DNA of 64,000 bases from Marsupella aquatica. Its lineage: Eukaryota > Plantae > Marchantiophyta. The position numbers and the translations under genes are program-made. Under the pieces are notes generated by a model, which was not told where the DNA came from, searched no databases, and worked only from the letters and a program-made list of their open reading frames with translations. Shown here one piece after another: positions 34,613-64,000 of the stretch (positions are counted from its first letter, which is position 1; each line of letters opens with the position of its first letter). The stretch covers positions 12,175,187-12,239,186 of the forward strand of contig OZ316898.1 of the NCBI GenBank assembly GCA_973895155.1. Reading direction: 5' to 3'.

Positions 34613-34706
34613 GGTTTTTGCGCTTGCACATTGGTCTCTTCACACACGAACATTAGCCGTGTGCGATGTTTGTGTGAGAAGAGGCCTATGTCCAAACGTA
34701 ACAATC
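34613..34706 (+). ncRNA. FRH1: pre-miRNA hairpin B, predicted mature 34671-34691 UGUGUGAGAAGAGGCCUAUGU (A17U variant)
   Basis: Homologous hairpin with one uncompensated change at position 17 and a weaker lower stem. Confidence 0.7.
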
Positions 34707-36942
34707 CCGACTCATGTAACGAGATGGCATGGCTGGAGCCATAAGCACTACATGTCCTTCTCCGCTTCATCTATAGGGTCTCACCGTTCTTAATTTCCCA
34801 TGCGGTTGGTCTAATCCAGTAAGTGGACAAGCCCCTAAGGGTGCTACGAGATTCGAATTGAAGCAGCATTCGACCTTCCATTTCGCGAAGCTTTTGTAGA
34901 ATGATTGTGTGCAGCAAGACAATCACTTAACTAACCAGCTTATTATGATTATGAGTCAGTTCCTTTGCTCGATCACTCAGGGATGAGTGAGCACTCTCTA
35001 GATTTAGAGACCACCAATGTACGTACCAGGGAAAGGGACACTGCACATTCGTTGCAGCAGCTAGCAACTGGTTGGCCAGGAGCAAATTGAAACAGATGAT
35101 TACTACTGTGCTTATTACCCATTATCAACGTGGTTTTTTCTAGACCTGAAGTTATGAAGGACCGGGTGAAGGACGACCGGGTGAAGGACTCTGTACAATT
35201 TGGGTTTATTAATTATCTCTTCTGATACTCAGATAAATCGGCTTGTTGCCTAAGTAAGCCGAGCTGCAGGCTAGGTCTGGTTCTTCAGTTGAGATTTCGA
35301 AGGTCAGATTAAAATTGTTTGAGCTGCTCTGTACCCGAGTATGTCTCTAGAACAATCATTTCAATCCCCGTTTCAATCCTAGAAACTCTGCAAACAATGT
35401 TAGTAACTTTCTGCAACAAAGGCCACCTTGTTTAAACTCCTCTGCATAATTATGTTACATGTTGGGCGTCGATTCATCGTAATATTAAAGTTTTTGATCA
35501 TTAATGATGTCTGATTGGTGGGAGCAAAATCGGTCCGATGGATTCCATGTGGCGTACGCCAGGCAACATTTCCATAGAGGAGCCATGGCCGCAAGGACAA
35601 CCAAGTGCAAAGCCTTGCTGCTCTCGGACAACCTGAGTCGTCATGGAATCTTCCAGTGACATTTTACAAGACAAGGAACTTTTTTTATTAGTTTCTCGCC
35701 TCTCACAGGCTCGATGAATCGACAGGACAGATATTTTTACTTTGCCATAGTACATTTAACTGAACTTCCGAATCGACAATGCATGCAGGGTGCGCGCGGA
35801 GTGGCTAAAATTGTTCTAATCTTGTTGTTTGAGAGTATAGCTTGACGAGAAAGCATATGAAGCAATTCATCCGAGTCTTCGACTGTTCTGTCATCTCATG
35901 GAACACAGCTAAGTAGCCGGGTGCGTACGTTTCCTCTTGAGAATCTCAGGTCTGTACTGAACACGTGTAATGCCGAATTCGAGCCCTGTAACGCTCTATT
36001 AACGCAAGCCATGATTCTTATCATCAATCGTTCAGAAAATGCTGATTGGATAAAAATTTGAGTTCAGCTTCATTGTATTGAATAAGCTGATCGAATCCGT
36101 GTGCTTAGAAGGGGTCCAGATAACTTTGTCACGATGCCAACTGGCAAGCTCGATCCGAAACCGTGGAGACTAACTGATTTTCAAATTCGTCTCGTGTACA
36201 GCTGCCGGTCGCCCCCAATATTCAAACCACGGTACTTTTGTCCGGAACACTCTCACTTTCTGCCCAAATCAACGACTGGCCAAATCGACTACTTTCTGTA
36301 TGCTTTGATTCTGTTCTAAGCGCGCGGAATCCTGTCTGTTCCTGGGATTCGCCGTATACTACGTATTCAACGGCTTTTAAGATCGATCCGAATGTATCCA
36401 GTTTACGTTTATTGCTCAGATCCTAAGTGAAACCTGCATGGTTGTGTTCGTAATTTATCTCGAGCAGTGGGAGACGTCGTTTCATCTAGCTCAGCCAAAC
36501 GTGATGTCGCGAACGAAAAGAAATAAGAGGGTTTGTTGCAGTTTCCAAGTTTTTTTGTCTAAAAGATTTGATCAGAGCCATTCATTTGGGACAAACTGTT
36601 GTTCACTTTACAAAACATTAAGGGGAAACCTGATACCAATCATACAATCATGAAATATAGTGGGACCCAATTTTTGAGCACTTTTTTTCCTGGATTTTAG
36701 ATCACCTCTCTTGGTGGTCTCTTCTTCTGGCTCCTTGGTCCATTTCTTTTTTAACTCATTTGCATCAAAAAGGGACCCACAAGTCCTTCATAAGATTTTC
36801 TATTGTCACATGTAAAATGACTGCCAAAGATTACGTGCGGGATTAGGTGACATTCAGGTGGAGTGGACACTCAATCTGTCACCATTGGTTGCACTTTGGC
36901 TTTACAAGACCTTGGGGGCAATAAAAGGATTCAAAAAATGTT

Positions 36943-37897: not shown

Positions 37898-40800
37898 TTC
37901 AAAAAATGTTTTTAACCCCATAACACTATATTTAATATGTACAATGCCCTCCAGTTTGCTTCGGTGAAATAAACTCCCAATTGCCCCCACTTCTTGTAAA
38001 GTACTTCTAAGACTTGTAAGTCGTGAGAACGCCTCCTTGTCCTATGTTTTGATTGTAAAAACGTGCCGTACACTTAATTGTGCTGTCAGTCCACAGAATG
38101 AATATGGAGACTGCACCTTGGATGTCATAGGAATATAGGACCGGCAACTATTGTATTGGTGCAACGTTGCTGCGCATGGGATATTCTTGATCAGATTGTG
38201 CTATATGCCGTTCACGCTGGTAAACGGCGGATAGCTGCGAATGACTATTTTATTCACAGTCGGTCTAAACTCGAAATGCTCTAAACCTTGGCTTCACAAT
38301 CAGAGTACCGAGCCAACGATGTAATAGAATTTTATACATCTAACCTAATCTGATCTTAGTCTAGAGTCTAAATGCAGGGGATCCAGCTCCACAGCCTGCA
38401 CTTACCCTCTATCGTATAAGCTTATGGGATATGTTTTACGCATTTCCCTATCTGTGCATGGATATGCTTTATGGATATATCCATATGGGCATGGTCGCAC
38501 AGCCCAATTAGTGTATGGAAATCTTCTTGGCACTTTCTCCTATGTGTTGTCAGGTCACACATATGTGACTCCGATTCTGAGACTGCATATTACAAGATCC
38601 AGGTGGATAAACGCATGAAATCAGTTTATGTAATTACCTATGCACTTATCAATAAATGCTTCTTACATAAGCATAGCAAAATACTTAGAGACTAGAATGT
38701 TGTTCATTGAGCCAGGGTGGACCTACACTTATACAGTGTGCAATTTCCAAAGGAAAGGGATGGGGCTACCTGACCGGCCTGCAGTTAACCCTGGAATGAA
38801 CTTATGCACAGTAGACTGTTGAATACCCACTCCGTCACTGGAATAAATGCTCTTTGACAAAGTCACTTTTGATGTGAATTTATCATAGGATTAGTAGTTA
38901 TTGACTCAATTTCCTGGATACTGGCATTGTCTTAAAAAAGGGCATACTAAAACCTCTTACGTAGGCAAATGTGATGATAGGTGCGAAGGAATGTACATAC
39001 TAGGAGTACACTTGATTCGAACTGTGTGGTGAAATTAACTAAGTTGAACTAATATCTAGAGATTCTTTTGTTTGGGCAATGGGCTAGACAGTAAGTTCTG
39101 GGGCCATTTTGGGGCATCACAATTACATTGAACTAAGACTAAAGTTCAGCAAACAAGTTTATCTGGTATGCGTGGTACATCCTGTGTACAGGAATGGCAA
39201 AAGCCATAGATTGTACACCTCGCAAGCCATATAGTAGTGGGTATGGCAGTGATCGAGAGAGAAGGAAGGAAGGGGAAAAAAGGTCTGAAATATTTCCATT
39301 CCCACCCCCTATTTTGAGGTTTTATCTCTTCCATTTTTTATCTTGCTGGGGCAAGTTTTTTTTTTGGTAGTTTTTTGTGCCAACGATATGAAATATATGT
39401 AAAATCAATTGAAAGCTCATCACCTGCGGCCCACAGGATCTCATGACAAGTACCTCTTGTCACCCACGGTAGTATACTCACAGACAATACAATTGCACCC
39501 GATGAGGCTGTGATTTCATCTGCTTCAAGCAATACAGACTCCTCAATTATAGATTACACATCGGAACAAGGTGGCTTGAATACGTGAACCTCCAACGTAC
39601 CACCCATTGAGTCGAGGATGGCCTAGACAACACGACAGTCTCCAGGGCTCAGAAGTGGCTGCACCATCGAGTTTAGGAGACATGCTTCGAATCCGTGAAA
39701 GACATAGCGATCTTTGAAATTTGAGAGAGAACAGTGATGGGAGGAGAATAGAATTGAAAATTGAAGTACCTATAGATCACTTGAGTCCCCTAACCTGTTC
39801 ACCGAGCGATAATTACCATATACCCATCAATTAATCCAGCACAGCAAGAAGGGACCGCAACGGGCCCACTCTGATTGGCAATTACCCACCTGGATCGGCA
39901 GCTTCCCACCAGCCGCACGCTGGGGAAGCTACGTACTGAACAGTTTGCTCTATCGTGTACAGGACAAGAAGCCTGTCTGCTCTCGTATGCAGTCGTCATT
40001 TATTCACACCAGTTGACAGAATCTTCGTTACGTATGTTAGCACATCAGCACACAGCCGTGCGAACTTCGCCATTGTGCTGGACTGCTGGTTGTTGGACGC
40101 AGTCTTTGACAACCTTCCACCTTGGATGAGTATTTTATTTTAATACCAACCACCAAGAAACCAGGAGGAATATTTTATTCTACCCAAGATCGACAATAAA
40201 TCAGGAACAGTAAACTGGGCAATGGCAACCCACTGGAGTGAATTTCGTTCCCAGGCATGATCTGGTCGTGCAGTCTTTCCGATTCGTCTAGGCCATCTTG
40301 GTTATAGAGGTCTCCAACCCTTACGCTTACTAGGTACAAGAAAGACCCTGCCAGCATTGACACATCATTATTTTAGTTCATTGGACTAACCTGGCTACTC
40401 ATGCCAAATACCTCACAATGGATAATGCTCTTACCCAGTGTGAGTGCACACGGGTCTCAGCATTGTTGAGCCTAATAAATTACATCTTGAATTGCAATCA
40501 TGGTCTTGAACCCTCTAAACTGTGATTTTGGGCGTCGTTACAGCCAAGACTACACTTTGCATCAAAAAGTCCTGTCCTAACAAAGCCCCAATACAAGCAC
40601 CTAAAAACACAATTAGTCAAACCACGCCAAAAATAGTGCTGTGGGGCCTGTATTCAAGCAATGCCCTATATTTATAGAGTTGGGGGAGGCTCAATGCTAG
40701 TGCATTGCACATATATATCATGACGAAGTGAGGCAATTCAAAGAAATATAGGTGAGGCTGTGATAAGGCAAGAAAGTCATTGAGGCCAGAATAAAAGTGT

Positions 40801-41747
40801 TATGCAGGCATGCAAGGTGACTTTTGAGCCCAATGCCCATGTTTTGCACAGCTATCAGTGTGGTTGTATATGTTGTTATTATATTTGAGGTCAGGTTGTC
40901 AGTGCAGCCGTGTTGTGGGTGTGGAAGTCAATCAATGTTGTTTCAAAGGGGTAGTCATTGCATTGGTGTGGTTGTTGCGGAAATGTTTTCACAATCACAA
41001 CATGGCTGCAACAATCATGTAGCCTATGATTCGAACCCAGCATTCAGAACATGAATTTTACCATTAAATTGACAAAATCAAGGTGCACGGATCAGGAGGC
41101 CCCGATTTATTCTTACCCAGAATTCATTCCATAAGCAGACAAGATGGCACATTCTCGTGATTACATATTAGATAGAGTAGTTACAAGGAGCTTATTAAAA
41201 TTTAATGCTCAAAAATTTGTAAGATATTTGTGGGGGATGAAAGCTGTGTTCACTTAGTACTTTAAAGAGACATCAAGCAGTATAAATTTCATGTTTCTTA
41301 CCTCAAGTGATAGATCTTTCGGAGTCCCGACACTGGCTGCTGCTGTTGCTTCTTAGAGCGCGGAGAACTGACTGTCTACACGGGGATTGGATTCATTTCA
41401 TCCTCCTTCCTTCCTTGGTCGTTGCGATCCTCGTTGCCTCCTGCCGCCTGCTTGCTGGCTGATCGAGGTGATTTCGAGTAGTAGTGTGATTTGAAAACGT
41501 GTACACCCCCAAATTCTCAACAGCTAGCAGCATCAATCGTCGTCATCCTCAGGGTTGCAAACTGACTGAACTCGGGTCACTTTCAGAATTTCTAGCTGCG
41601 GTTGATTAATTGATCGAGCAGCTGAGTGCGGCCCAAAGCTAGGCAGGCGGTGGACGACAGGTTGACTGGTGCAGGCTCGAGTCGCGCGACATGCGTTCGA
41701 CGGATCAGAACTGCAGTCAGTGGATGGAATGTCATGCTTCCCCACAT

Positions 41748-41841
41748 GGTTTTTGCGCTTGCACATTGGTCTCTTCACACACAAACATTAGCCAGGTGCG
41801 GTGTTTGTGTGAGAAGAGGCCAATGTCCAAACGTACGAAAC
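41748..41841 (+). ncRNA. FRH1: pre-miRNA hairpin C, predicted mature 41806-41826 UGUGUGAGAAGAGGCCAAUGU
   Basis: Duplex identical to copy A. Confidence 0.78.
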
Positions 41842-44800
41842 TCTTAAGTAATTCAGATGGCTTGACCCGGGGCACTGATTAAGAGTGAGCCTACGAGATT
41901 CAGTTCAAGCAGCGGTCGACCTTCCAATTTCCGGAGCTTTGTAGAATGATTGTGTGCAGCAAGACGTCGATCACAATCAACTAACCAGCCAATTAAGTTT
42001 ATGACTCAGTTCCTTTGCGCAATCATGCACTCAGGGATGAGTAAGCACCCCACTAGAATTGGAGACCACATAAGTACGAATCAGGAAAAGGGTCACTCAA
42101 GGTTTGTTGCGGCGGCAAATGGTTGTCCAGGAACAAATATATTGAAGCAGATGATTACTTCTGTGCTTATTACGCATGATCCACATGGTGTTTCCTAGAT
42201 CGACCTGAACTTATTTATGAAGGACCCAGTACAATTTACGATAATAACCTCCCCCGATCGATACTCAGAGACATCGTTTAATTTTGTTGCTTGAGTCGAG
42301 CTGCAGTGGCTGGTTCTTCAGTTGAGATTTCGAGGGTCAGATTAAAATTGTTGTAGCTAGCTAGTCTGTACCAGAGTCTGTCTCTCGAACATTTCAATTC
42401 CTGGAAACTCTCCAAACAATGTTAGTATTTTTTTACATTAAAGACCACCTTGTTTAATCCTCAGCGTCGATTATATTCGTTGTAATAATTTCTTTCAAAT
42501 CATTATTGATGTCTGGTTCTCGGGATCGAGCAAAGTCGGTCCGATCGATGCAAAGTCGAATTCAAGCTCTACTATCGCAAGCAATAGTCTTCCGATCTAA
42601 CCTTTTCGGAAAATGTCGAGTGACTAGAGTTTGAAGTCTGCTTCGTTATATCGAACAAGCTGCCCGGCAAAGATTCTCAGCATTATGAAGCGATTTGCTA
42701 CTAGGTAGCAGCTCCTATCCATAGCTCCACATCCCGCCCCACATGGGAGCACTTGGTACGTACAATATTGGTCCTCGTGAAGCATCATTCTGCCAAAGAC
42801 CACCAGCTGAATCTATTCCTTTTATGTTCAAGCTGCGCGCCTAGTACGGGTCTACGGTAGCTCCGCATTGAATCTGCAGGCTCATCATCCCCCACGTAAC
42901 TTCGATGGCCGAGAGTTGAAGCTAACTGAGTCACGATCAAATATTCATCCCATTCAAGCAACTTACATTTGGTTCTTCGGGTGTGAACTTACTGGTTCTG
43001 TCAAAAATCATCGAAGCAATTTCGAATTCACGTTAATTGTAACGCCTGAAGCACTCCGGTAATGAAATTGATAAGCCCGTGCATGTGTTTACGAAATACC
43101 GTTTCACATAGTCGTTTTCTTCTCACTTCTGTGATGAGTTCAAGGAACCGCTGATCTCTGTTGAGCTGCAGTTTTCTTTCGATACCGCTTCTTTGCGTTT
43201 CAGTGACTTTCTTAGACTTTGTGGTGAATTTGTAGAAGAAAGTCTATATATGATCAAAAGGTGAAGCAAATATGACACATGTTTTACCATCACTCCAATC
43301 ATGCCCTCACCTGGGAATTAATTTCTCCATCGATTGGAATTAAAGTCGGCTTGTGTAGTAGCAGGCCAGTCTAATCATGGAAGCGCATTCCAATCACGCG
43401 CAATCGTTCTAGGGTCTAGAAACACTAGCTAGAGCAGTGCAGTTCACTTGGGGTCTACTTAACTACTCGGAAGTTGGTCTTTCGAAAGCTAGGCGATCTA
43501 ACGCAAGTTAAACAAATCACCTCCAGTCTGAAGAGTCGAAAGGATAGGAACTGGACTCGAGGAACTCGATCCCTTGTCAAGCAGGAAACAAGGAGAAGCT
43601 TCAGTAACCTGTTCTGAGATCAGTTGACTTGATTTCATCGGGTTTGCTTTTGGGTTCAAATCCATTAATTAAAAAAAGATAATTTGTGAGGATACCACGG
43701 TCACGACGAGCTCACACATATATGTGAGGTACAGGAAGCGGTACTGTGCCTGAACACAGTACTTGTGATTTGGTAGCTAGCCTACGGTCTCCGTTTTAGA
43801 CAAGCAACAGCAGCGAATAAGAATAATAGAACATTAAGCATACCGGTACAGAACTGCTTCAAGCTAAGCGGCCGCATGACCAACGTGCGGGCCAACGGGC
43901 CATTTAATGTGGACGTTCGGTATATTTTCTTCTGTCAGTAATAGTACTGGCTTATAGAGTCTGCCAGAAATCATTTGGTGTGCTAGACGTACCTCGTCAT
44001 GACTTGGGAAGCATGGCTGCTGGTCATGGAAGTAAGGCAGGAAAGTTGGTCATGACCCAGATTTAGCTCGACCTCAATTTATTGTACAAAAACGTTTTAG
44101 CCCCGCTTCACATTTGTTTCCCACGATGCCGACTGGCCGGCTCGATCCGAGCCATGGAGAGTCGATATGATTTTGGACTTCGTTTAGTACTATACAGCCG
44201 CCGGTCGCCCCCAATCTTCAAAGCACGTACGGTACCCAGCACCAGAGTACTTTTCTCCGGAACATTCTCGCTTTGTGGACAAATTAACCAGTGACTGGCC
44301 AAATTGACAATTTACTTTTATATAATTATGCTTCGTTTCTGTTGTAAGCGCGGGTACTCTTGTCAGTTCATGGGATTCACTGTCGTCTACAGATCCAAAT
44401 GCTTTGAAGATCGATCCGAATGTCTCCAGCTTACGATATTGCTCATTCATATATGTTGAATGAATCGTGCCCTGGTATACCCAAGTTCCACTGACCGCAC
44501 TCAAATTTCATTAGACATACCATCTGTTGAGCAATGTTTAGCTCTTCTATGGAAAAATTGGATCAGAGCGAACAGTGTTCCGCATGTTATCATGACACTG
44601 ACGAAGTACTATAGCTAGAACCAAGCTGCCTACTTGTTAACCATACACCCAACCTTCGTACTTCTTAGAATTGACAGAGTATACCAAACTATCAGTAATG
44701 ATGGAGTTTTCCATTAAATGTTGCTTTGAAGGTATCAATCCAGTCCGATTATCCGGACAAATTTAATTACTTGGTGCCGCACGATGTTGGCTAGCTAGCT

Positions 44801-45987
44801 ACTTTTCGAAGGTGTCCAACAGTCTGACCTAGCAAGAGAGTCAGGCATTGAACGATTAGGTCATTCTGGAGATGGAGGGATGCCACCTAGGTGGCTGGCT
44901 TCGTAATAAGGTAAGGTGCCACTATTCCTATGCCCTGGGAAACTACCCTCGATCCAAGCTTGTGAGGGTAGTGGACCATGTAAACATAACGTGCAATCTT
45001 CCATAAAATTGCTGTCTGGCTCATTACACAGGCATCCTAAGGCACCGGGGGACCCTTGGCACCTACTGTTTACCTTCCAGAGTCAATAGAAAGTTCATCC
45101 TCCGTAGACGCTACGGACGTGCTCGTCTGGGACCCGGGGACCCTGGAGACCTAGTCCACAGCGTAGAAAGTTCGGCTGCTGGTCCGTGAATTGAAAGACA
45201 CGAGAGCAACGACCCAATCCTATTCATGCACACCATCCTGTTTGATCAATTCACGGCACCACTGCCTGCAATGCCGGCCGGCCCCAGTTGCCACCGTCAT
45301 GAATATGCAATCTGTACACAGTCACCTATGGTGTCCTGTATTTTCTCCTTCCAGTTGGTTCGTGTTCAATTGTTTGTTCCCACTCTGCAGGAGGAAAAGT
45401 GCACAACACTACAAGTCCACTCTGATCGCAATTTCGCCCTTCGCCCCGGAACGGAAAATGGAATTTATCAATCAATCACTGCCATCTTTAGTAAGCTTTG
45501 TCCCACCATGCATGATAAGTCCTTTGTCCCGGCTCATAACCATATTTTTCGGAGGATGTTCTCATGTCTGATCTGTCCCCGGCAAGGGATGCGATGGTCA
45601 AGCTCAGATCAACCTGCAATGGGCCCACTCTTACTGGCAACCCAGGACCATCATCAGCATGAAAGCTTCCCACCATGGCGGTCGCTGCGCTATCTGCCAA
45701 GCTACTTAACAGTTGGCTCTATCCTACAGAACCCTAGTGACAAGCCTGTCTGCTCCCTTGTACACTAGTCATTGCTCCCTTGTACACCCGGCTTGTACAC
45801 TAGTCATTGCTCCCTTGTACACCCGGCTTGTATACTAGTCATTCCTCCCTTGTACACTAGTCATTCATTCACCCTAGTTAATAGAATCTTCATTGCTCAC
45901 AACCGTGCACACCTCCCTTTTTGTTGGCGTCCCTGTAATCACATTAAAAATGAATACCTGCATACACATATAGAATGACACTCAATT

Positions 45988-46852: not shown

Positions 46853-49800
46853 AAATACTTATTTTACATCAAGATTATTTTGAATGACAAAATTCTATAA
46901 GAATTGTGTAAAGGAGTATAAGTGCAAAAAAGAGAAACAAAGTATTTTGAAATAATGAAAACATATAGGGGGTCTGAGATAAATTCAAAACTGATGAAAT
47001 AACAAAGAAGACAGCTCTCATATGCCAAATTAAAATTAAAATAATGACAAAATAAAAATGAACTAGGAAGACTGAAACAAAGATTCGCATTATAGCAATG
47101 TCGGAAAAAAGCATATATGAACAAGGACACTATAATACTCACCTGGCCATCCAAAGTTTGTGATCACGTTCACGCACACTAGTGGCCCTGTGATTCACAT
47201 GAAAGCACTAGGTTGGCAACAAGTGGAAATAAGGGGAGATTGATTGGCTTCTAAAGCTCAAGTCACCCTAAGGGGAGGTGACCTTGAGCTACTCTAGTTC
47301 TACTATGCATGAAGAATCTCATCAAGGACCCGCAATATATTGATAGTTAGTTGAGCGTTCTTGGATCTGTAGCGTGAGACCGTCTCTTAGTGACACCAGA
47401 CCATAAATTGCAAAGCTAGCAACAAACGTTATAAGACGACGAATGGCTCCCTTGAGAAAGGGACTGTGCGCAATACTTACCACTTGTGAAGTTGCAAACC
47501 ATCCAATCCCCATGGACTGTGACACACCCTTTAGAGTGTCACGAGTGTCACGTGCTGATCCTCCTCCCACTCCAAGATTTTTTTATGAGCCAATTTAGAC
47601 CTTCAATTTCTCGCTTTATCTGCAATTGAGTGGGTCTTAGACATAATTATCCTCGAGACACGTGACTGTTTGAAATACATCGTTTGCTTACTACAGTTCG
47701 ACTAGTACTGAGCAGTTGTAAGGATCCGAAATAGATTCTGGCAAATTGCTCGCATGCTGAAGCTACTCAGGCTCTTGATCTCGTTGTCAACTTACATGCA
47801 CTACTATTACCCAACTAGCCAAGTAGAGATGTTCGCCGTCATAACTTCGGTGGCATTGCGAACTACATGAGTCGTGTGGGCCAGGACGGTTCTGTACTGA
47901 GCTGCAGTAATATATAATTAAGTCTGATGACTGAGCAGTATTAAGTTTGATGCCTTTGCTGCCGGAGGACTTGGGTTGGACAGGATTGACCTTGATTCTG
48001 CATTGCTAATTAATTACTGCTGCTGCTACCTTCTAGAATTGTATATTAAGGTTCCAGACCAGACCAGCTAAAGTGGCTCGCTGTTGTGGCTGTCTTGCCA
48101 TCGATCTTTTTGTTAATCCCCACAGCTACAATGACATGGCTGGAGGTCTGTGCTGTAGCGCTGTAGAATCAGCAAAATCAATATATAACCTCCTTCGGAA
48201 TCTAGTTGGATAGAATGCGCGGGTTTGGGTTCAGTCCACTATTATCAATTCAAATATATTTTAATCTTCATGAAAGTACAGCCATGTGTAGGTTATGTTA
48301 CCAGATTCGCTGCATGCCCCAGGCCTTCACTCACTGCAGGACGAACACAACCTCTTGCAGCAGCAGTTAGTCCCATTAGACCATTCTGCTGCTGGCTCTC
48401 GATGTGGTGCCATTTAGTTTGATCGTGGCTTGCTTCGTTTTGGTATTTCTGTTGAGAAATTCAAACCCCAAAAACGCCGCCGTGACCAAAGCGAGGGAGG
48501 GCAATATTTTGACGCGTTTTTGCACTGAAGATCCACCCGGGCACGAGACTTGAGTAGAAACGAAATCATGCCAACATGGGGAAAAGTGAAATTTGTCCAA
48601 TCAGAGCAGCGTATTTGGTACACATGGCATTCCAACACGGAGATTGCATTGGAAATATACACCTGCAACGTTTGGGCCTCGACTGGATGCCATGTGAATT
48701 GGTACTAGACCATGTGGGACGCACGTGATTGGAATATCTGGGATCCCACGGCTATGACTCCATAAATTCTGCTGAGTCTCTAGGCTAAGGATTTTATTAT
48801 AGTTTGTTTGTACAAACTTGCAATTTGTTCAATGGATAAGTTCTTAATTATTGATTAAGCAGGCATTCTAATAATATAATTGCATTGCAACAACTGTCTT
48901 CGTTAGTTTGCATAGGATAGCGCAAGGGCAGGAGATCATCCGGTATAATATTTAATTTGATGCTCGACGGACAAGACGACCGGGCATCCAACTGTCCTTG
49001 TGAAGGACTAACTTGTCTACCTTGGTATCTTGCAATCTTCAAGGAAGAGTTTGTTATTAAAATTTCGATGTTTTGCTGTTCGGCACTACCTCAAACATGA
49101 TGATTTCTTTTGAAATTTTTCGGTTTACCATATATGATATTTAGCTTTACAGGGCAGCTGCTATTGGTGACTGCCTCAGGCAGACATGATCAATTTCCTT
49201 GAAACTTTTCTCCTATTCTTGCAGCCGCCAAGTATTCCAGTGTTACGGAGGCAGTGTACTCTTCAATCTGAATGTGTCAATTGAGTTCCTGTTGCAGTAC
49301 TAGTTAAAGTGATCCATGAGCTCGAGTTACCAGAATGATTTGTGGTACGTCAAGTTATCCAAATGAAAGATGTCGTCCAGCGAAGCAGAATGCTGATTGG
49401 TTGGATCGAGACTTATAAATTGCCCATGATGATATTGGAGCTCCAGCCGCTGCATAAGGCTTTCGTCATCTTCATTGTCTAACGAAGAATAAGGCTCACG
49501 TCAGGTTTCCTGTGGATTGCCTGCAGTTTTCAACGATATTCCTAGTTTCTTCGCCAGATTCTGTTACAACAGTTTCGATAGAGTGATGGACGGGCTTCAT
49601 GCTCAACATTGCCAGCCGGCAGGGGATCTTCAATTAACGTCAACTTCTGCCGCCACCACAACACTAGTATTCGAATAGATGAGGACTATTCCAATCCGCG
49701 TTACTGAGGATACGTATAGGTCGCATACTTGCCAGCGAACATGTTTCAAATTAACGTACCTTGACAATCTTCAATCCACAACGCTATGACCTTTTTGCCT

Positions 49801-51439
49801 AGCCTCTTCAACTGTCCAGCTTGTTGATTGCTAAAATCACTCCCCGAACACAGTTGAATAATACATATATAACTCGGACACACATCCAAGTTGCAATAGA
49901 ACTTTAAGGGGCTTTACAGAGTGGAAGAGACAAGTAATGTCCTCCCATTTATATCCCTGTCTATCATTAATTTTGTCATACTACTGTAATTTCAACAAAT
50001 ATCACAGTTCATTTCCAAGCCAATTTTCTCGAAGAACTCAGCCATTCGTTGGAACAACGATATTGTAAGATACACCTCGGGCAATTTTGATGTACTCAGA
50101 ACATCCTGAGTGAGCAACTTTGTGTACGTGCCGTTCCAGAACGAAAGGGAAAAAGACTAATTATGATGGGACTTCGATCCTTCTAGAACTCCTCAGATAG
50201 TCGTTACTTAATGTCTACTATCTGCCCCAGCGCTAGCTAGCTTTACTCAAAACTTTTGCTCGATTTCAGAATCCCTTTATGCGGAACAGTTGTCTGAACA
50301 GTATTCATCACGTTTGAAAAAATTACCCTGCAGCAGGTCATTTTCACTTTATATAATACCTACTCTCAGGCGAAGTATATAGAGCTTGTGGGGAATCTTG
50401 TCATCTGCATAGACGTCGTCAACTAAAATGTTCCCGAAACACGCCACATTAACCTGGGAGGTAAATAAACGTGGGCCAGTAGGGTTAGATATCAACTGAA
50501 TCCTTCAGTAACTGGGAGAAATTATGAAGACCATAATGATGGACCAGAAACAGCCCCCAAAGTAACTTTGCTAGTAGGAACTTTGCAGTACACGAAGGCT
50601 ACTATCGAGGAATCCCGTGGTTCACGGAAGTGCAGTAATCTGGGAAACCATTGGACTTGACAAGCGATCGGAATTTGAACCAACTTCTAAAACCCCTCCC
50701 GTGAATTAGCTGGACAATGGTGTTATTGAGGAGAATAACGGCAGGATATGTCCGATAACAAATCTTCTGTATGATGTTTTGAGACAAAGGACACAGCGGA
50801 AAAGTTATTTTCATTTAACAGAACTACCTTCATGAGAATCGCCTCTTCTTCGTCCTATGTGGCTTGCTATATTATAATTTGACCACCATGGGCACTTGCA
50901 GTTCTTTGTCATCAGCATCATGAATTTTGAGGGCAATAACTTAAGAGCTCTCAGATGACCATTTCACCAAGAGAGACCTAAATTCGAAATTTTCCCCTTG
51001 ATTACTCCAAGAATCTTGTGCAGGGCGTGCTCCTGAGGGTCGAGCTTGCGTCACGCCATCCTGAACAGAAGCAGGTGTCGTCAATTTCTCGTCACTCAAT
51101 GGCAGCAAATTCTTAAGTTGAATGCATGCAACAAAATTGAGTTGGTCATATAACCATAAACTAATGAGCAAAACCCGGGGTAGTAATGATGAGCTAAACG
51201 CACTTTATGAAGTTTAATCAGTGGACCATCTATATTTGACCTGTCCATGTACGATTCCACTAAGACATTCTAATCATTGAATTGAGCAACGGACCTGACA
51301 GAGGTCAACCCAGAAACCTTCAGTTCCAATAAATAAAGACGTGGTGAATTTGAAAAGCTAGGAGACGAAATTAAAAGACCAAGACTGCCGTACATAGGCC
51401 CAATCAGTCTTGCCGAGACAGATTGGGCCTATGTGACCG

Positions 51440-53300
51440 AGAATGCTGCAGAGATACATATTTGCAGGACTAAATATATCATTGGAAGAAGCCAACCAGC
51501 CCGGGAACCAGCCTTTTATAGAATTGGTGTAAACTGTTGCCAAATTTTGTGGCTTTACTCGTCTACTGAGTAGGAACAATTAAGGCTCATTTGAGTCAAA
51601 ACCCGACTTGTCTACTTGTGCTGCAAATCATTTTTGCACAATACATTAGACCTCGGATGCCTTCTTCATCAAGAATCTTATCCAATTATGATCAGTGAAA
51701 TTTTGCAGCTCGACAATCCTTCTCTACAAGGGAGTGAGCTCATACCAAATATAGTTTACTTTACTTAAGCACAACCTGAATATCAAATTAGACAGGACAA
51801 AATGATCACCGGGATTATCGAGACCAGAAAAGGGTGAAATGTGGTCAGATAAGCGCTTCACCTATTATAGGTAAAATCGGGGGGTAAATCCGGCTGCCTC
51901 TCCCCTGACAGAATCCTTTGTGGACAATGTCACTATCGAAACTACGATTCAGGTACTATCCAAAAGCTGCTGCATTTGCTTTGATCAGGTGAAGCTTACA
52001 GTTGGACGTGTGGCACACAATCTTAACGTTGGGAATCAGACTCTGCACTCCTACACGTGACCAGAGTTTTGGGCGCGTGATTTACATATTTGTGTTGTTG
52101 ACAATCATAATACTCCAAGTTATTGACATTTCCAGTAACACCGAGAACTAGGAATGACTCTTATATATGACAATATCCCACCAGAATTTTGCTCATGTCG
52201 TTTTCAACTCCCAGCTCAAAAGGATCGTGCACATTTCTAAGACACATCTGCGGATCTTCTACGACTACCGATTCCAAGCCCTGGACCTGCTTGCTCTACA
52301 CAATGAACCAGGTCATTGATTTCCTCAGTCAAAGACTAATGCATGATTTCATTTTCAATGGCTTTCACAACCATACCTACACAAATCAGAAGCAAATACA
52401 CCGGTAATGGTCTACATCTCTTGTCTGGCTAGTTTTATAGAAACAATGAGTGTACCTGTCGTGCAATGTCCCTGTGAAATGCTACAATCTTGGTTCGGGC
52501 CGATTTGGAATGTTTTCTGTTGCCTTATTAACTGCTTTGACCATGCCAAGGTGGCCTGTACTCACAAAAGTCATGCACAAAGAAATGAGAATGATAGGAA
52601 TACAACAGCCATTGAACAGAATACGTTTATCGAAATACATCAGTAAAATCGAGCATGCTAACTTAGGAAAACTAATTTGCGGCTGAAAATTGCTGGGGGC
52701 TTCAAATAGTCATCATGTGCAGGTAATTTGTTCTTGGCACAATTAAAGAAATCGCAACACTGCTCCAATACTACTCCCGTTTAGAAGAATGTTTAGTCCG
52801 AATGATGAACAGCATTTTTTATCGCTAATCTGAAACGAAGTTTGCGCATCTAAGAAGGTACTGAAAAGCTTTAGTTTACAAAGTGAGCAGATTTGTGAAA
52901 TCCAAAAATACTCGCAATGTACCACTGTTTCCTGAACTCCGGGATGCAAAGGAAGATTTCTGGGAAGGGATTCTTTTATATAGGACCTTTCGCTTGTCAA
53001 CCTCCACCCCTAATCTCCCCATATGTACGTCAACTCACCCTGCAGCACATGATCCAGAATCGAGCCCAGACTAAGTTTGAAACAATCCATCTTTGTTCAC
53101 AGGATTCGGATCACATCCACTTTTAACAATTGTTCAATGTAAGCTAGAATTTTTTTATCCTGCTCACAAGAAATTCTCCCTCTCATGTGAACATCTTAGG
53201 CCATACGTACAACATTCGTAGTCAACATCTTATGAAATGCAACATGAGCTTCTTGTTTAGACTGATAAGGAATGAAAGCTGCCGACTCTGTTCAGGTTTG
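51440..53300. repeat. Module X copy 1 (homologous to about 61930-63975)
   Basis: Collinear similarity, e.g. TTTTGCAGCTCGACAA...CTACAAGGGAGTGAGCTCATACCA. Reading frames are broken. Confidence 0.8.
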
Positions 53301-54718
53301 ATGCGCATTATGATAGAGCTCTGAGTTAACTTAATTAAAACCATCTGAATCCAACTATTGTGCATTTAAGTGAATCATGTAACATTCCCGGTAACATCTT
53401 AATTGCAACCTCAATATTCATAGCGGGCTCCATGTACTTTCGTTTTGTTCCAACTTTGGAGTATATTGTAATCACATCCATAGAAAAGTGAATGATACAA
53501 CTCTTCTTGACATCTGCATCCCGATTTGTATCAAACGGAGGCTGGGAACACAGGGCAATACCGCAGGATAAGACGATTGAATGCCAAATTTTCTTCATTT
53601 TGTAATCCATACTTGTAGCACTTGACTGATGTACATGTCTTCAGTTAAAGGTCCCAAGGAGGCTGAAACCAAACAGCAGAGAAACTGTCTTGAGTAATGA
53701 CATTAATTTATAAAAGACACGGGCCGTATACTTACAAGGCTCATTACTTGATTGGGATCAGAAAAATGAGGAACTCGGCCACACAAATCCCAAAGACTTA
53801 AAGTGAAACTAGGCGACTTAACACAGTAGAGTTGGCGTAATTCGTGTCCCACTGACCACCAAATATTCTTCTTGCTAATAGACCTTTGACTGGTTAGTCA
53901 ACACTTGCAGCTCACCTGCTCCTTGAAGTGGAATTTGATGGTCTTTAGGAAATTATTTACGACAACGCTATTTATGCTTCAATTGTGTTAGCCAGCACCA
54001 ACCTGAAGAAGTCTATGCTTCAGATCCTGAATATAACCCGCTCCAACCCAGAAGAAGAGATCTTGCGAGTCAGTCCAGCTGGTCCTTCTCTGTTTTCTGA
54101 TGTATGTGATTACATACAACGACTGACAATTATACTCACTTTCAGCTAACCCAATATCAACAGGTATGAACTACTTCGAACAGGACCACTGTCTAGGTTG
54201 ACGCGGGGGCTGAAGTTTAACCAGCTCCGTAAAACATATATGATCGCCCGTGTTCTTTCATTTTGCAATACGGGGAGTGTAGAATGGAGTCCCAGGATTA
54301 TCGAGGGGATTACGAGAATGGAATTTATTGTGCGGTTGTAACAAGTCAGGTCAGGCAGGTGTTTCGATGTGTTTCGTCATCTTGATCGATCCTAGCTGTG
54401 GGGTATGCGTGTCCTCTCTGTTCGGCCGTCATAATGTAGCGGACACATGATGGCATTGGGGAGCTATAAGTCTCGCAAGCAGGTACGCTTCCTACTCCCT
54501 AACTAGACAAACAACTTAAGTAGGGGTCAGTTCTCCAACGATGAGACGAAATCAGCAGTGACATCAGAGATTGACAATTATGTCATTCCTTGAGAGAATC
54601 CAAAGAGCTTACGTACCATGAATTACTCTTCTTCAATGGTCACCTGTTTGAGCCATTGCACAAACAGTTTCAAATCTGTCGCCGAATGCAACAGTAACCC
54701 CAATCTTCGCTTCAACAA

Positions 54719-54775
54719 CTATTTCGTTTACTTATAAAAGACAGCAGCCCGGTCCTAGTCTCATCAGTTCGCTAG
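54719..54775 (+). promoter_or_regulatory. Pol II core promoter of pri-miRNA copy D
   Basis: Same TATA block (TATAAAA at 54733) and TCATCAGTTCGCTAG. Confidence 0.75.
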
Positions 54776-54982
54776 CTAGTTAGTAGTAAGACTGCCTTCT
54801 TGACTTAGTTGCTGGTGAGTGATTGATCTACTACTACTTCCCTCACGAATGGATCTGTCAGCGACCTCGTCCTGGATCGAGTGATCCAGGCGGCCGGACG
54901 AGGAAGGAAGCCAGAATCCCTGACTCGATCGCAATCGCAAATTAACCCAGCAGAACAGCAGTGGATGGAACGTTCCCCGCAT

Positions 54983-55077
54983 GGTTTTTGCGCTTGCACA
55001 CTGGTCTCTTCACCCACAAACATTAGCAGGGTGCGGTGTTTGTGGGAGAAGAGGCCAATGTCCAAACGTAAAAAACC
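54983..55077 (+). ncRNA. FRH1: pre-miRNA hairpin D, predicted mature 55041-55061 UGUGGGAGAAGAGGCCAAUGU (U5G variant)
   Basis: Homologous hairpin. G55045 pairs with C55014, where the other copies have a U:A pair. Confidence 0.75.
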
Positions 55078-58000
55078 TTTCTTACGCAATTTAGATGGCG
55101 TGACCCGGGCTCCGAAGAGTAACGAGACTCGAATTAAAGCAGCGGTCGACATTTCATTCTCAGCAGCTATTGTAGAATCAGCAAGACGATCACAATCAAC
55201 TACGCAGGTAAGTTACTTTGCTCACTCAGGGATGAATAAGCACCCTCTACATTTAGCGACCACCTACGTACCTACCAGGGAACGGGAGACTCTACGTCCT
55301 TGCGGCAGCAGCTGGTTGGCCAAAAATAAGTTGAAACAGATGATATATTACTACGGTGATTTTTAGTCACCTATGATCCGCATGGTTTTTCCTAGACCGG
55401 AAGTCATGAAGGGCCCAGTACGATTTCGTTTAATAAGCTCTACTCATACTCAGATACATCGGTTTGTTGCCTGAGCCGAGCTGCAAAGTCTAGTTCTTCA
55501 GTTGAGAGATTTCGAAAACTTGTTGTAGCTAAATAGTCTACATACCTAGAACATTGCATTCCTGGAAACTCTCCAAACAATGATTTACAATTACTTTTGT
55601 GCAATAAAGACCAGTTTGTTTAAAGTCCTCAGTGCATATGTTACATTCTGGCATCGATTCGTTATGATAGTTTTTATTTCATCTCATTGATGTCTGGCTC
55701 TTGGGACCGGACCAAAGTTGGTGCGATCGATTCGAATCAAGATTTTCTACCATCACTCCAATCATGCCCTCAAGCTTGTGTACCATCACTCCAATCATGC
55801 CCTCACCTGGCGATTTCTTCCGTAGTTATTGGAGCTAGTCAAAGAAGGCTTGTGTACCATCACTCCACTCATGGCATTCCAATGAGGCGCAATCGTTCTA
55901 GGGCTCAGAACATTACAGAGCAGTGCACTGGGGATGTACTTAATTCCTCTGTAGTTGGTCTTGCACAAGGCGATCTCGCAACTTAAACCAATCACCTGTC
56001 GTCTGAAGACTCTAAAGGTAGAAATTAACAAGGAGTTCGTTATGGGACCAATTGACTTAATTTCACCCAAGTTTCGTTGCTGAGCCCGTTGCTGAGTTCA
56101 AATCCATAAACTAAGAAAGATACCTTGTGACGATAGTATGTTCAGGACGAGCTCAGACATGTGAGGTACAAGGAGCGATATTCTGCATGAACCCAGCACT
56201 TGTTTGTGATTGGTAACTAGTATGCGGTCTTAGGTAGAATACAAGACGGTAGCAGCAAATAAGAATCGAACGTTAACCAAACCAGTACTGCTTTAAGATT
56301 AGATGCCGCATGACCAAGGACGTTCACAGTTCACCAAGGCATTCACAGTTGCTCGCGCTCGATCGAGATTCAGAATGAGCTAGAAATGCTCTAAACCTAT
56401 TTTAATTGCATTCACAATCGCGGACTTGTTGAAGAATTAATGGAATTTCATACGTCAGTGATCTTCAAATTGTGTCCGTGTACATTAGTTGTTCAATGAA
56501 GTAAACAAATCATAACACCTTCGCCAATTGTCAAACTAGTTTACTACTTGGACTTTCAAACATTTAGTTGCCAGAGCTGAATTCAATCGCTCACCGCTGC
56601 ACACTCGACTAGGTTATTTGGCGAGTGCGGGCTGAGAATGTTTTGATATATATGATCTCATATCATGACTAGTTCATTTGGTGATGAACTGTGCGCGGTG
56701 AGAATGTTTTTTGAGTCCACCGCATATCGTGACTTTTTGTCCCATGAGAGAAAGGTCTTCACGTCTTAACAACTAAATTCGAGGTGTGCACTAGGCGTTT
56801 CGATCTTTAACCAGTCAATGACGATAACGGGAACCGCTGCGCTGTTCGAGAAGTTCTGAGTGAGTTGCACGCTTTCTGGAATAGTACGCACAAAATTTTG
56901 AGCTGACCTTCATGCACCAGCTAGGTCTGCGGTGGGTTGGAGGAGGACGTTCACAAGGCTTTGTGGCCAGGAATAGAGGGGCATGGTTCCATATATTTGA
57001 GATCAATGAATTCCAGGCAAGAAAGTCTTGGTAGCGAATCTTCACTGGTGAAGCCCTTGATACAGTGCTTCTTCGGTAAGCGGCCTTGCTTATACATGGT
57101 GAGCTTGGAACTTTGATTATTCTCCTCGTTTGTTTTATCATACAAACTTTACGAATTTGTTCCCAAATATATCCAAATGCACGAATGTCAACAAAGGGTG
57201 ATGCCTAATGGTGTGGAAATGAATCGAAACACTGCAATCTATGTACAGATTATGATCTGCGTTTCGTGTGTTCAACGAGTAGTTTTCTCTTACTTGATGT
57301 GCTTTATGGCGGACCTCGGGCGGACCTTTATATGCACAACGTACTGCGTTGCAGATTTCCTGAACGAGGTAGGGTTATGTCCCAGATGATCTGGAAAGGT
57401 CGATATCTAGGAACTTAACGCCTCGAAGATATCCTGGTGCGAATGGATCCGTTGGCAGTGCATGAAACAATTTGCCGAAAGACTAATATACTAATTTAAT
57501 CGACAGAACATTAGTCTTTCCGCGCCCAGCGCCTTGGGGCATGGGCGATTTGCAAAATTAGAGTTAGATTACCGTAATGTCTGTTCACTGGAAAGATAGC
57601 CTATTTGTCCGACCCAAAGCAACCGAGTTTCCAGAAGCGCTTGAATTTTTCAAACAGAAACCTGTCTGACTGCCAGTGCAATTTATAACCTTCAGCGTCG
57701 ATCCGAAGTTTTGAGCAGCATCCGTTAGCGAGGCCATAGATTGCTTAAAAAGTCACTTAGCACGCTAGCTTGTTGCTCATGAAGTTCTGGAGGAATCTCG
57801 TTCGCTAAATATCAAACCCTCAACAAGTTCATTTATTATACAACGAGATCCGATCGGCCCCACTTAATTTGAGATACAAGTAGGGCGCCATTGACGACGT
57901 ACCTCTGTGGATTATAATACCATGCAGCTCCTCTGCATGTACAGCACATCGATGACGCTGTTGATGCTGAGTCACTTAGTAGGAAGTCTAAATAGAACTT

Positions 58001-61000
58001 ACTAGCACTATCCCCCTCAGCAGTGCTCACCTGGTGAGACTTGGTCATCTCCACACAGGACCAAAACAGTGAATCTATCTTTTGCATGGATCATAACCTG
58101 GTCTTTCAAATAATGTGTTTTCGATTCTCTGGTATGAATCGAAGCTTCAAGCAGATCGCTAACTTCTTGCGCTCAATGTCCAAGACTTACATCAGATTCG
58201 GAATTTTGTTGTACAGTGCTTCATCTCAGTATGCCTCATGCACCTTCCCTTCACCTAGATCAGGTCATATTTTTCACCGTTTCAGGATCTAGCTAGCTTC
58301 GTCAAACTTCACAAAGGTCTGGAATGTTTTTGGCTGGGAAACTCGTGGACAAGCTTGTACGCATCGCCGGTGTATTCTTCCCGGTAATTGTTCTGCTTAC
58401 GTCGCACATGCCAACATATTCCTGGCCACCGTCAGAATACTTAAACCAGATGCATGGTAGGTTCAGTATGAATCGAATACTGCAGGAGATACTGCATGCC
58501 TGGGGGTGTGTGAACTCCTTGGGTAGATTGTGTGCCTGCAGACAGAACTCTGTTTGTTTGGACTTCTTTGACCTAGCTATAGATCATACTTAATTAACTA
58601 GTCCATCCCAGGTTCCACTGACAACACTCAAATTTCATTAGACTTATTATCTGTACAGCAGTCTCTAGCTCGTCTATGGAAACGGATGGAAGAGACCGAA
58701 CAGCGCTCCGCATCATATCATGATATTGAACAAATACTACAGCTACTGTAGAGCCGGGTTGCTTATTTGATAGCAGTATATCCAACCGTAACCGATAACC
58801 TTCGTAGTACTGACAGAGTACACAAACCTATCATGATGGATTGATTTAAAGAAATGTCGCCGGCGTTGTGAAGGTATCGATCCTGTCCGATCATCCGGCC
58901 AACTTACTTACACGGTGCCGCACGATGTTGGCTAGCTAGCTACTTCAATTCTTAAGGTGTTCAACAGTCTGACCAGGCATATAACGATGCATGAGGTCAC
59001 TCTGGGATGGAGGGAGATGACCAGCTTAGAATATAGGATGCCCTGGGAAACAACTTTAAGCTCAATCCAAGCTTGTCTGAGGTGAGTATATACACTAGAC
59101 ACCACGGACCAAACAACGCAGCCGTGCTGGCACACATTGGATCCTGGAGCAAGTAAACACTACGTACAACCTTCCATAAACCCCTGTGTCTGGCTTATCA
59201 CACATGCATCCTACTTAGACGCTACGGACAAGCTCTTCAGGACCGCGGGACGCTGGAGACCTACTGTGGAGCCATAGAAGTATGGCTGCTGCCTCGTTTG
59301 ATCAATTCACTGCACCCCTGCCTGCCGGCCAGCCCCAGTTGCCACCGTCACAAACATTGATACAATCTGTACACAGTGATCCATGATGTCCTGTACCTTC
59401 TCCTTCCAGTTCGTCCGTGAATCTCGTTTGTTATGAAGATCTGCTGGAGAGTGTAGTACAACTCCAGTCCGACATCGATATTTCGGGAAATCTCTAGGGG
59501 AATCGAAAATGGAATTCATCAATCAATCAAGGCCATCGTTAGTTGGGATTTGTCCCTCCATGCATGGTCAGTCCCCTGCTGTCCCGGTTCAGAACCATAT
59601 TTTTCGGAGGTTCTTCTCTTGCATGATCTGTCCCCAGCCAGGGATACGACGGCCAAGTTTATAATCTTCACCAAGCCTTGCCATAAAACCATCAATCCAG
59701 CACTGCAAGGAGGGGGAGGTAACATGTAAGCTCAACGGGCCCGCTCTCACCGGTAGCCCACCTCTCGGCAGGAAGAAAGCTTCCCAGTTCCCACCATGGC
59801 GCCCGCTCGGGTACACTCTTTGCAGTATCTAGATCTCACCTAAACTATTTTAGTCTCACCTAATTTATTAATTGTGATATTATATTTAGAGCAGGTGTGT
59901 GACTAATCTATGTAACGAAGGTGGGCCAGTGAGGTTAGATATTAACTGAATTCTGTGGCTGGGAGAAATTATGAGGACCAGAATGATGATGGACCAGAAG
60001 CACCCGCCCCCCGGATATAACTTGCCAACAGGAACCTTGCAGTACAGGAACACTCTGAAGGAATCCCGTGGGACACGGAAGTGCAGTGTTCTTGGGAAAC
60101 CTTTCCACTCGACAAGTGATAGGAATTTGAATCAACCTCTGAAACCCCTCCCGTGGATTAGGTGGACAACGGTGTAATCAGAAGAATAACAAAAGGATAG
60201 TCTCATGACATCTTTTGTATGATGCCGTCGTTTTGCGACAAAGCACTAGCGTCATGAGAATCACCTTTTCTTCGTCCTATGTGGCTTGCTAAATTAGGAA
60301 TTGACCTCCGTACATGCACAAACACAACCTAAATGCATAAATTCCTCTGTTCATGCAATAGGTTGTGTTTTGTGTAAACGCAACCAAAGAGCAAGGAGAC
60401 TTTACCCATAATTGACATTACCATTCGGAAAAGGGAAACGATGCCTACGGAATACTTTCACTTGTGCTTTGAACCGGAGAGCAGCTCAAACGTAAATGGG
60501 AGAGCAATCCATATGTGAAACAAACAGACACCCAGCCGTGAAACAATCTAACAGTGTATGAACATCTGTACTGAACGAAGAATAAGCAGAAGAGGGAGGC
60601 GAAAAGTCCATAGTGCACCATAATTCTATAAACCGAACTAAATGTTGTCTGCAAATGTATGACCACCACTTACGAGAGAGCACTGGCAGACAGAGCAAGA
60701 ACAAGCCTACGAATTTCCGTTTCAGAACCTAGGCGGCGGCTGCCAACCCTAAACAAATCCGCTCTACCTTTTGAGTTAGTCGAGGCCTTTCCAAAAATCT
60801 CCCATTGAATGAGACATTGTCCCGTAATATTTGACTCGGTGGCGCATTTCTAGCGCAGTGACCATCACATCCGAATGTCAAGCTACGAGACAGCTATTGG
60901 ATTCAGTGCAAGGATGGAGTCGGGAAGAAGTTGGTCAATGGCACAATTAACACACTTCGTTTAGGGGACCAAAGGAGCGAGATATTTTATGGGGTCGTAC

Positions 61001-64000
61001 AGGTCCCCAACAAGCTTTTACAAGTCGGTATCATGTTTAAACACTCCACTTTGCCAGTCAACGAACACTTTATTCTCAACCCTTTGAAACTTACGGTAGC
61101 AAAGAAAAGACAGTGCAGTCAGGGCAAATCTCCCTCATCTGAGAATTCGCAAGTCCCGTTCCCTATATTAACTGAAGTTGTTCCCATTGTCAATTGACGT
61201 GTGTAATAGCAAGTAAAATCACCTGTAGTTTAATTGTCTGATGTCTTCTGGATCTCTAGTGTTGCATCAGTTGCTTCAAAAACTTCCCTACTGACGGAAT
61301 CCAGAATGATACAAAGCCACCATGCTGAGCAAAAGGTGTAGGAGAGCAGCACTAAGATCAACTTCCTAATTGTGACTGTCACTCATGGCCCCTGCATTAT
61401 TCGAGAAGACTTGAAGAAATGATCAACCACTTACCCTGTAGGCCGGGGAACAACCATCGTTGCTTGCACAGGATAGCATGACCACTGCTGAAACCTTCAT
61501 TAGGACGCTCTTCCGACACTTCACAACCATCAAATTTTTAAAGGCTGAAGAGCAAATCATAATATGCCCTCCAGGGTCATACAAATGCACTGGCAATAGG
61601 CTCTACCCTTGTCAAGAGAAGATGGCCTTTTTTCGGGAAAAGTCGTGAATAGCACCAGCCGTCCACCGGGATTTTTCCCTACATTCTTCCTCAAAATCCT
61701 GACCGTTCTCGGAAATTTGGCAGGTATTCCCATAGTGAGAACTTACTCTGCTCTTCGGGTGACCGTCCTAGTGCTGCTCTCTCTTTTGGACAATACATGT
61801 GCACAAGTGATAATTCGTTGCGTTACCCAATAAGTTCAATCATAACTCTAAAGAAGTCGAGTTCTATACTTCGCAACTTCGCAGTCAAAAACCCGAGACA
61901 CGAAGAAAAATATAGATTGGACCTTTGTGATCGAGAATGCTGCAGAGACAATCATTTGCAGGACTAAATCATTGGAAGAAACGCCATGATGAGAACTAAA
62001 CCAAATTGCGAGTCCCACGTCTTGAAAACGGCTGTGTTCCATTAGAATCAAGGAAGGAGACACTGGCGACACATATAAAAAGTGCGTCAACCAGCCTTTT
62101 TATTCACTAGTTGTAAACTGTTGGCAAAATTTCATGAACTAATCACCTGCTGAGTAGAATAAAGCTCATTTGATTCACAGCCCTGACTCGTCTACTTGTG
62201 CTGCAAATCATTTTTACACGAAAATACACTGGACCTCAAACCGGGATGCCTCCTCCATCATGCCTCGAGTCCAAATATGATCAGTGCAATTTTGCAGCTC
62301 GACAACCTCTCTCTACAAGGGAGTGAGCTCATACCAGATATACACTACTTAAGCACAGCCCGAACCTATCAAATTAGACAGGATAGAATGATCAACAGGG
62401 ATTATCGAGACCAGAAAAGGGTGAAATGCGTTCAGATAAGCGCTTAACCTATTATCCGTAAACTCCGGCTGCCTCCCCACACACAGAATCCTTCGTGGCC
62501 GACATCAAGTTCGAAACTGTGATTCAAGAACCGTCCATAAGCTGCAGCATTTGATTTCATTCGGTGAAGCTTTAATTGTACTTGTGCACACAACCTTTCA
62601 TTGGGAGTGAGACTGCACTCCAACACGTGACCAGAGCTTTCAGCACATGATATACATATTGATACTGTTGACAATTATAATGCTCCACGTTACTGACATT
62701 TCCGATCAAAGCAAGACCTAGAAATGACCTTCATGTCAATAACCAATAAGAATATGGCTCTGTCGTGTTCAATTACCAGCTGAAAAGGATCTTGCACATT
62801 TCTTAGACACCTCTCCGGATCTTCTACGCCTACAAGTTCTATCCCCTTGACCTACTGGGTGTACACAATGAAACGAAAGTCTATCACTATCCTCTGATTT
62901 CTTCAGTAAAGACTCAACGACTTCACTTCAATGGCTTTCAAAGTACACTTATCACAAATCAGAATCAAACACACTGGTAATGGTCTAGCTCTAATGTCTG
63001 CCTATTTTTATAGGAACACTGTACCTGTCGTGAATGTCCCTGTCAAATGTTATAATCTTGGTTCCGGCCAATTTGGAATGTTTGCTGTTGCCTCATTAAC
63101 TGCTTTGACCAAGGTCACCTGTACTCACAAAAGTCATGCCCAAAGAAATGAGAACGATAGTACTACAACAGAAAAGGTTTAAATAAATACATCAGTAAAA
63201 ATCGAGCATGCCAACATGGAGGAAAACTAATTTGCGCCTTCAAGTTTCCGGGAGGTTCGACTAGCCATCACGTGCAAGTAATCTGTTCTAGGCACAAGAA
63301 ATTGCAACAGTGTTCCAAAGCTTCTCACGTTTGGAAGAATGTTCACTCCGGATGTTAATGAGCATTTTTTGTGGCTAATCTGAAACAAAATTTGCGCGAT
63401 TTGTGCGTTTAAGGGTGCCGAAAAACTTCAGTTTACAAAGTGAGCAGGTTCGTGAAATCCGAAAGTACTCCAAACTTACCACTGTTTCCGGAATTCCAGG
63501 AGGGGGTAAAGGGAGATTTCTGGGAGGATATTCTTCTGTAAAGGACCTCTTGTCAAACCTCCACTCCCCGATCTTCCCATACGTCAACTCACCCTACAAG
63601 AACATGATCCAGAATCCGAGCTCAGACTCAATTTGAAACAATCTATGTTTCTTAATAGGATTCGGATCACACTTTTTATTTTTCAACTTTGGATTTCTCC
63701 GCAATAGATTTAAAAGATTTGTTTTACTTGATTCATCAAAAACTTCATATTTAGTTGCGGGTCTTACAAAAGCGAAAGGTTTTTGTTTGGGAGGTATAAC
63801 CCATGGGAGGTATAAACCCTGTGTAGGTTAAAAACTATCTGTCCTGCTCACAAGAAATTCTTACTATCGTAACATCTTATGAAATGCAACATTCGTACCC
63901 AACTACGTCCTCCGGAAAAATATGGGTTCGTGGTTATACTGATAATGAATCAACGCTGACGACTTTGTTCACTTTTGTTGAGCATAATCGAGGATCAAAT

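Follow-up and report, generated by a model that had tools for sequence, protein, structure and literature searches.

The window analysed here, a stretch of 64,000 nucleotides of Marsupella aquatica DNA, contains four hairpins of the FRH1 (miR11861) microRNA family. The last of these, copy D (54983-55077, + strand), is best explained as an FRH1 family isoform that is aimed at the same target, RSL1, without retargeting, a reading to which we give a probability of about 0.6. In Marchantia polymorpha, FRH1 restricts the formation of rhizoids, papillae and gemmae; its target, cleaved at the mRNA level, is MpRSL1, a bHLH gene of RSL class I (Honkanen et al. 2018, PMC6141232; Thamm et al., bioRxiv 10.1101/854869). 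The literature treats MpFRH1 as a single locus, whereas the array described here is composed of four tandem copies. Deletion of that single locus in M. polymorpha leaves no detectable miRNA (bioRxiv 10.1101/854869).

The 64-kb window has four matches to the family 21-mer and four to its near-complement, a total of eight arm matches against none in shuffled sequences. All four hairpins are on the + strand, have 95 nt and fold strongly, with energies between -46 and -52 kcal/mol and z-scores of -7 to -9. Copy A (17450-17544) is identical to the four-copy consensus, and its mature arm (17508-17528) and that of copy C (hairpin 41748-41842, mature arm 41806-41826) both read TGTGTGAGAAGAGGCCAATGT. 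The 3' arm of A and C, UGUGUGAGAAGAGGCCAAUGU, is exactly the published mpo-MIR11861/MpFRH1 sequence (21/21), while B and D match it at 20 of 21 positions, with the 5' U kept in D. In copy B (34613-34707, mature arm 34671-34691) the mature arm differs only by A17U, a change left uncompensated in the hairpin (U.U). Over the whole hairpin there are six substitutions in B, four in C and four in D, and each variable site is private to one copy. The mean pairwise identity of the hairpins is 0.92-0.93, versus about 0.7 or less in the flanks, and the pairwise p-distance is 0.03-0.11 in the hairpin and 0.22-0.26 in the flank; at the kilobase scale, flank identity among the copies is 66-82%. Judging from these comparisons, the four copies lie in old segmental duplications, and form a tandem array of putative miRNA FRH1 (miR11861) genes. 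The preliminary description had taken D for a paralogue, and the 20/21 match to mpo-MIR11861 identifies it as a paralogue of FRH1 type.

More blocks of the same old segmental duplication, with 70-80% identity, are found after the FRH1 units. Self-comparison places them at 22191-24531, 44480-45773 and 57503-59778, at 28999-32017 and 47765-50862, and at 51506-53311 and 62089-63988. Two ORFs in these blocks (23728-24153 and 45226-45768) were scanned and contain no Pfam domains, and for this reason most of the repeat unit appears to be non-coding. ORFs of the repeat units, among them one of 161 aa that runs through hairpin D, belong to no Pfam family and were treated as spurious. To the left of the array there are transposon-type ORFs at 866-4258 (+), 5968-7941 (-) and 9429-10385 (-); the Pfam domains of the ORFs on this side are DUF7869, Transposase_21 with DUF4218 and DUF4216 (CACTA-like), and a SET domain in one ORF. 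Internal tandem-repeat arrays were also seen by self-comparison, at 30-825 and 27105-27658.

Copy D is identical to A at 91 of the 95 hairpin positions. Its mature arm (55041-55061, + strand) reads TGTGGGAGAAGAGGCCAATGT, corresponding to a predicted 3p miRNA UGUGGGAGAAGAGGCCAAUGU, a U5G variant of mpo-miR11861. As positions 55041-55048 are UGUGGGAG, G55045 is position 5 of the miRNA. The register of the two arms, derived from the sequence and the alignment, pairs base i with base 110059-i, and the predicted miRNA* (5p) is ACUGGUCUCUUCACCCACAAA (55000-55020, + strand), in which C55014 faces G5 and C55001 faces A18. At 55014 copy D has C and the three other copies have A, so that a G:C pair replaces U:A. 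This is the change that had been reported previously, with pairing kept, and the sequence, the fold and the alignment all agree with it. Among the 41 pairs of the four-copy alignment, of which 97% are paired, it is the single pair changed on both sides (columns 32/63). The second change reported for D is equally present: a T>C substitution at 55001 leaves A55058, at position 18, facing C, and this A:C is unpaired in the fold.

The fold of D retains the G:C pair, with a minimum free energy of -50.8 kcal/mol (z -8.0) against -51.9 kcal/mol for A. Its 31-nt lower stem is unchanged, and in a 150-nt fold the stem terminates at a single-stranded junction. The miRNA/miRNA* duplex of D has -28.1 kcal/mol, with mismatches at position 7 (A.A) and position 18 (A:C), one G:U pair and no bulges. 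D thus stays within the community annotation limits for a plant MIRNA foldback, at most five mismatched positions and no large asymmetric bulge. The folds and a comparison of the arms by eye show its mature sequence in the 3' arm of a homologue of the MpFRH1 precursor. A search of the whole window against Rfam gave nothing at the gathering threshold. The best match below it was MIR1882, with 35 bits against 107, which is a generic hairpin resemblance, and a model for MIR11861 seems to be missing from Rfam.

The similarity to M. polymorpha is concentrated in the duplex. In MpFRH1 / mpo-MIR11861 the mature sequence is on the 3' arm, as in the array copies, and the two arms match the array over about 27-28 nt each (by eye), being nearly identical within the duplex, down to the A.A mismatch conserved at position 7. 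All four copies differ from the 1.2-kb MpFRH1 transcript in the loop, the lower stem and the remaining sequence (by eye). In the supplementary sequences, the M. polymorpha hairpin has, by eye, U at position 5, T at the equivalent of 55001 and A at position 17. Because this hairpin has U/T at position 5, the G5 of D is taken as derived, and by the same comparison the D and B states are derived relative to M. polymorpha. In the star arm, position 5 is faced by G in M. polymorpha, with a U:G wobble, by A in copies A-C and by C in D; this star position is labile across species. The MpFRH1 transcript deposited with PMC6141232 has GGCCAATCTCC within the mature miRNA, in contrast to GGCCAATGTCC in both the TAIL-PCR reads and the miRNA as stated; the former is probably a typing or sequencing slip.

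The published target site is informative about the consequences of the change at position 5. The 5'RLM-RACE clones of the MpRSL1 product read TTCTCTCACATCCACC directly past the adapter, with the clone start at TTCTCTCACATCC (PMC6141232). With cleavage at the canonical 10/11 bond, the bases of MpRSL1 opposite positions 10 to 1 are UUCUCUCACA, and a perfect complement would be UUCUCACACA. Since the RLM-RACE product begins with UUCUCUCACA, the MpRSL1 base opposite position 5 is U, not A. The canonical FRH1 has therefore a U:U mismatch at this position, and the G5 of D a G:U wobble. In the published mutagenic primer, the 5' part that was left unmutated (…TCGTGGGCC…) shows that MpRSL1 has a G opposite position 17, an A:G mismatch with the canonical form, and the A17U change of copy B is predicted to form a U:G wobble there. 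Predicted duplexes on the MpRSL1 site have -28.6 kcal/mol for the canonical form, -32.1 for D and -32.9 for B; the site used is that of M. polymorpha RSL1, with positions 11-12 deduced and position 19 ambiguous. The RSL1 site is 100% conserved in 12 liverworts of two classes (PMC6141232).

The array has just two mature-arm changes, and these coincide with positions 5 and 17, the sole internal ones left unpaired with MpRSL1. The probability that both would fall on the three unpaired positions (5, 17 and 21) is (3/21)^2, about 0.02, and that both would also create a pair about 0.01, figures that were calculated post hoc. Variation of the mature arm at positions unpaired with the target is, again post hoc, the pattern expected of paralogues still selected for RSL1.

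The locus of D also has the elements of a putative promoter. A conserved core promoter block (54719-54772, + strand) contains TATAAAA at 54733-54739 and, about 30 nt past it, the start-site context CTCATCAGTTCGC (54760-54772). Within it, a 28-nt stretch bearing the TATA box is identical (28/28) in A (16667) and has one mismatch in B (33863), with 0 such matches expected by chance and an identity of about 75% in the surrounding flank. The layout is the same as that of the published MpFRH1 promoter, TATATAAAT...CTCATCATTCGGC with the transcript start TCGGC, and MpFRH1 resembles the array copies in its TATA box and in its CTCATCA-TCG start context. Downstream, in the predicted 5' leader of D, there is a small conserved palindromic stem-loop (54868-54891, + strand) with a perfect 8-bp stem, CCTGGATC-GAGT-GATCCAGG, found elsewhere only in A (16825-16848) and B (34016-34039). 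Its fold has a z-score of -3.9 in A, where it is inside a larger helix, and only -1.5 in D. About 480-520 nt of 5' leader retained in A, B and C are missing from D (54933-54983 versus 16886-17411), and due to this loss the predicted start site of D is about 215 nt from the hairpin.

Upstream of copy C (40700-41400) the TATA/start block and the leader stem-loop of A, B and D are absent. Homology of C to A and B begins only near 41320-41383, past unrelated AT-rich sequence. Thus, from its sequence, copy C seems to have had its promoter lost or replaced, despite its perfect canonical hairpin.

The preliminary description had further proposed that the double change in D reflects selection on processing. 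The kept pairing fits selection on the hairpin, and the numbers agree with this proposal only in part. For a random placement of the four substitutions of D on 95 sites (40 pairs), the probability of two falling on one pair is 0.054, and the fraction of such changes that restore pairing (0.33-0.44) lowers it to about 0.02. Allowing for the substitutions of B, C and D together, the probability of a compensated pair rises to about 0.1. The placement calculation was used because a shuffle control of changes in paired columns (106/500) is uninformative with only four sequences. A fold as good as that of D is reached by only 6.5% of random four-substitution variants of A. The compensation departs modestly from chance, with weak statistical support because there is one such pair in four sequences, and selection on the stem of D is suggestive, not proven. 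As in compensatory substitution in RNA hairpins generally, D would have gone from U:A to G:C by a double transversion via a mismatched intermediate.

The change at position 5 had been read as weakening the ancestral target or recruiting new ones resembling ACATTGGCCTCTTCTCCCACA, the star change being then selected for processing. Position 5 is in the region where mismatches between plant miRNAs and their targets cost most, and the compensation suggests that the hairpin still mattered; both points are in favour of such a retargeted paralogue. That proposal was not borne out, as it assumed a perfectly complementary target: MpRSL1 has U opposite position 5, and G5 improves the predicted pairing (-32.1 versus -28.6 kcal/mol). 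The variant of copy B shows a similar pattern at position 17, and the 64-kb window has no site complementary to the G5 variant except the star arms. We consider retargeting very unlikely. A search of other papers for the RSL1 site string returned unrelated matches only.

Drift of D as a decaying redundant copy after duplication, with the two changes on one pair being a coincidence, has several points in its favour. A compensated pair has a chance of about 0.1 family-wise, and D-specific changes are about 2-fold rarer in the hairpin (4/94) than in the aligned flank (45/495), a difference that is not significant (p=0.08). Three of the four D changes are in the 42-nt miRNA/miRNA* duplex, where the rate is not distinguishable from that of the flank. 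The uncompensated A:C and the large leader deletion point in the same direction, as does an unfavourable strand asymmetry. The 5' end of the miRNA has -3.5 kcal/mol in A and -5.1 in D, and the 5' end of the star -2.8 in A and -1.8 in D. A strand whose 5' end is relatively more stable is disfavoured under the usual asymmetry rule, and the G:C at position 5 together with the A:C at the far end are predicted to shift the asymmetry against 3p loading, the 5' U notwithstanding. However, the lower stem of 31 nt is without change and the fold energy is retained, the TATA/start block is identical to that of A at 28/28 positions amid a flank of about 75% identity, and the mature-arm change is at a target-unpaired position. 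Decay is on balance unlikely. The double change could also have a mechanistic origin, an intra-hairpin template switch or quasi-palindrome correction that copied the change across the arms in one event, without selection. Near-perfect inverted repeats are a substrate for template-switch mutation, and the arms of D form one. Against this, neither the new A:C nor the conserved A.A at position 7, only two bases from the changed pair, was repaired, which would limit the copied tract to 1-3 nt, and such an event accounts for the origin of the double change but not for the conservation of the remaining hairpin. This origin is very unlikely.

For copy D as an isoform that keeps RSL1 as its target, the following steps are proposed. 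By homology, a TATA-driven non-coding transcript would fold into the hairpin of 95 nt, which DCL1, measuring from the lower stem, would cut some 15-17 nt above its base, and a 21-nt 3p miRNA with a 5' U would be released. This miRNA may then guide AGO1 to cleave RSL class I bHLH transcripts, which would limit the rhizoid cell fate. In the D lineage, miRNA position 5 would have gone from U to G, and the star base opposite it to C, with the stem remaining paired, and the variant would still fit RSL1 through a G:U wobble in place of the U:U mismatch. What the analysis observed directly is the sequence of D, its fold, the compensated pair, the conservation and the promoter block; expression, processing and AGO loading of D, as well as the RSL1 site of this species, are features that we infer.

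Multi-copy plant MIRNA families such as MIR156, MIR166 and miR159/319 have members that differ by one or two bases, and in them tandem or segmental duplicates have hairpins conserved far above their flanks, with single-base isoforms among them, a few of these having compensated changes in the stem. The FRH1 array, with duplicates and single-base isoforms, is similar to them. In miR159/319 the sequence differences do separate target sets. Unlike these, D is not predicted to separate from the canonical form in its targets, since the changed base faces a target base that is already unpaired. As a one-base isoform with a compensated stem, the D variant is probably an ordinary family member. In the papers searched, neither the G5 mature form nor FRH1 paralogues are described. 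Metagenome matches to a degenerate 21-mer (n=14) consisted of the 21-mer only, with no hairpin, and were considered chance; no liverwort relatives are among them.

A more specific interpretation is that the array is an affinity series of FRH1 isoforms, in which B and D would be stronger RSL1 repressors through their wobble pairs. This is rather improbable. If true, the species would tune lateral inhibition of rhizoid fate by which copy is expressed, and the canonical form would be keeping its mismatches with RSL1 at positions 5 and 17, both internal and conserved. Taken alone, an isoform that differs by one base and has a compensated stem change is nothing unusual in the evolution of a miRNA family. 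FRH1-RSL1 is a textbook case of lateral inhibition mediated by a miRNA in a basal land plant, and work on it has dealt with a single gene. With its four copies and two variants, a species of this kind would offer a natural test of the pairing that FRH1 requires to cut RSL1, of whether the conserved FRH1:RSL1 mismatches are functional, and of the diversification of a miRNA family without target loss.
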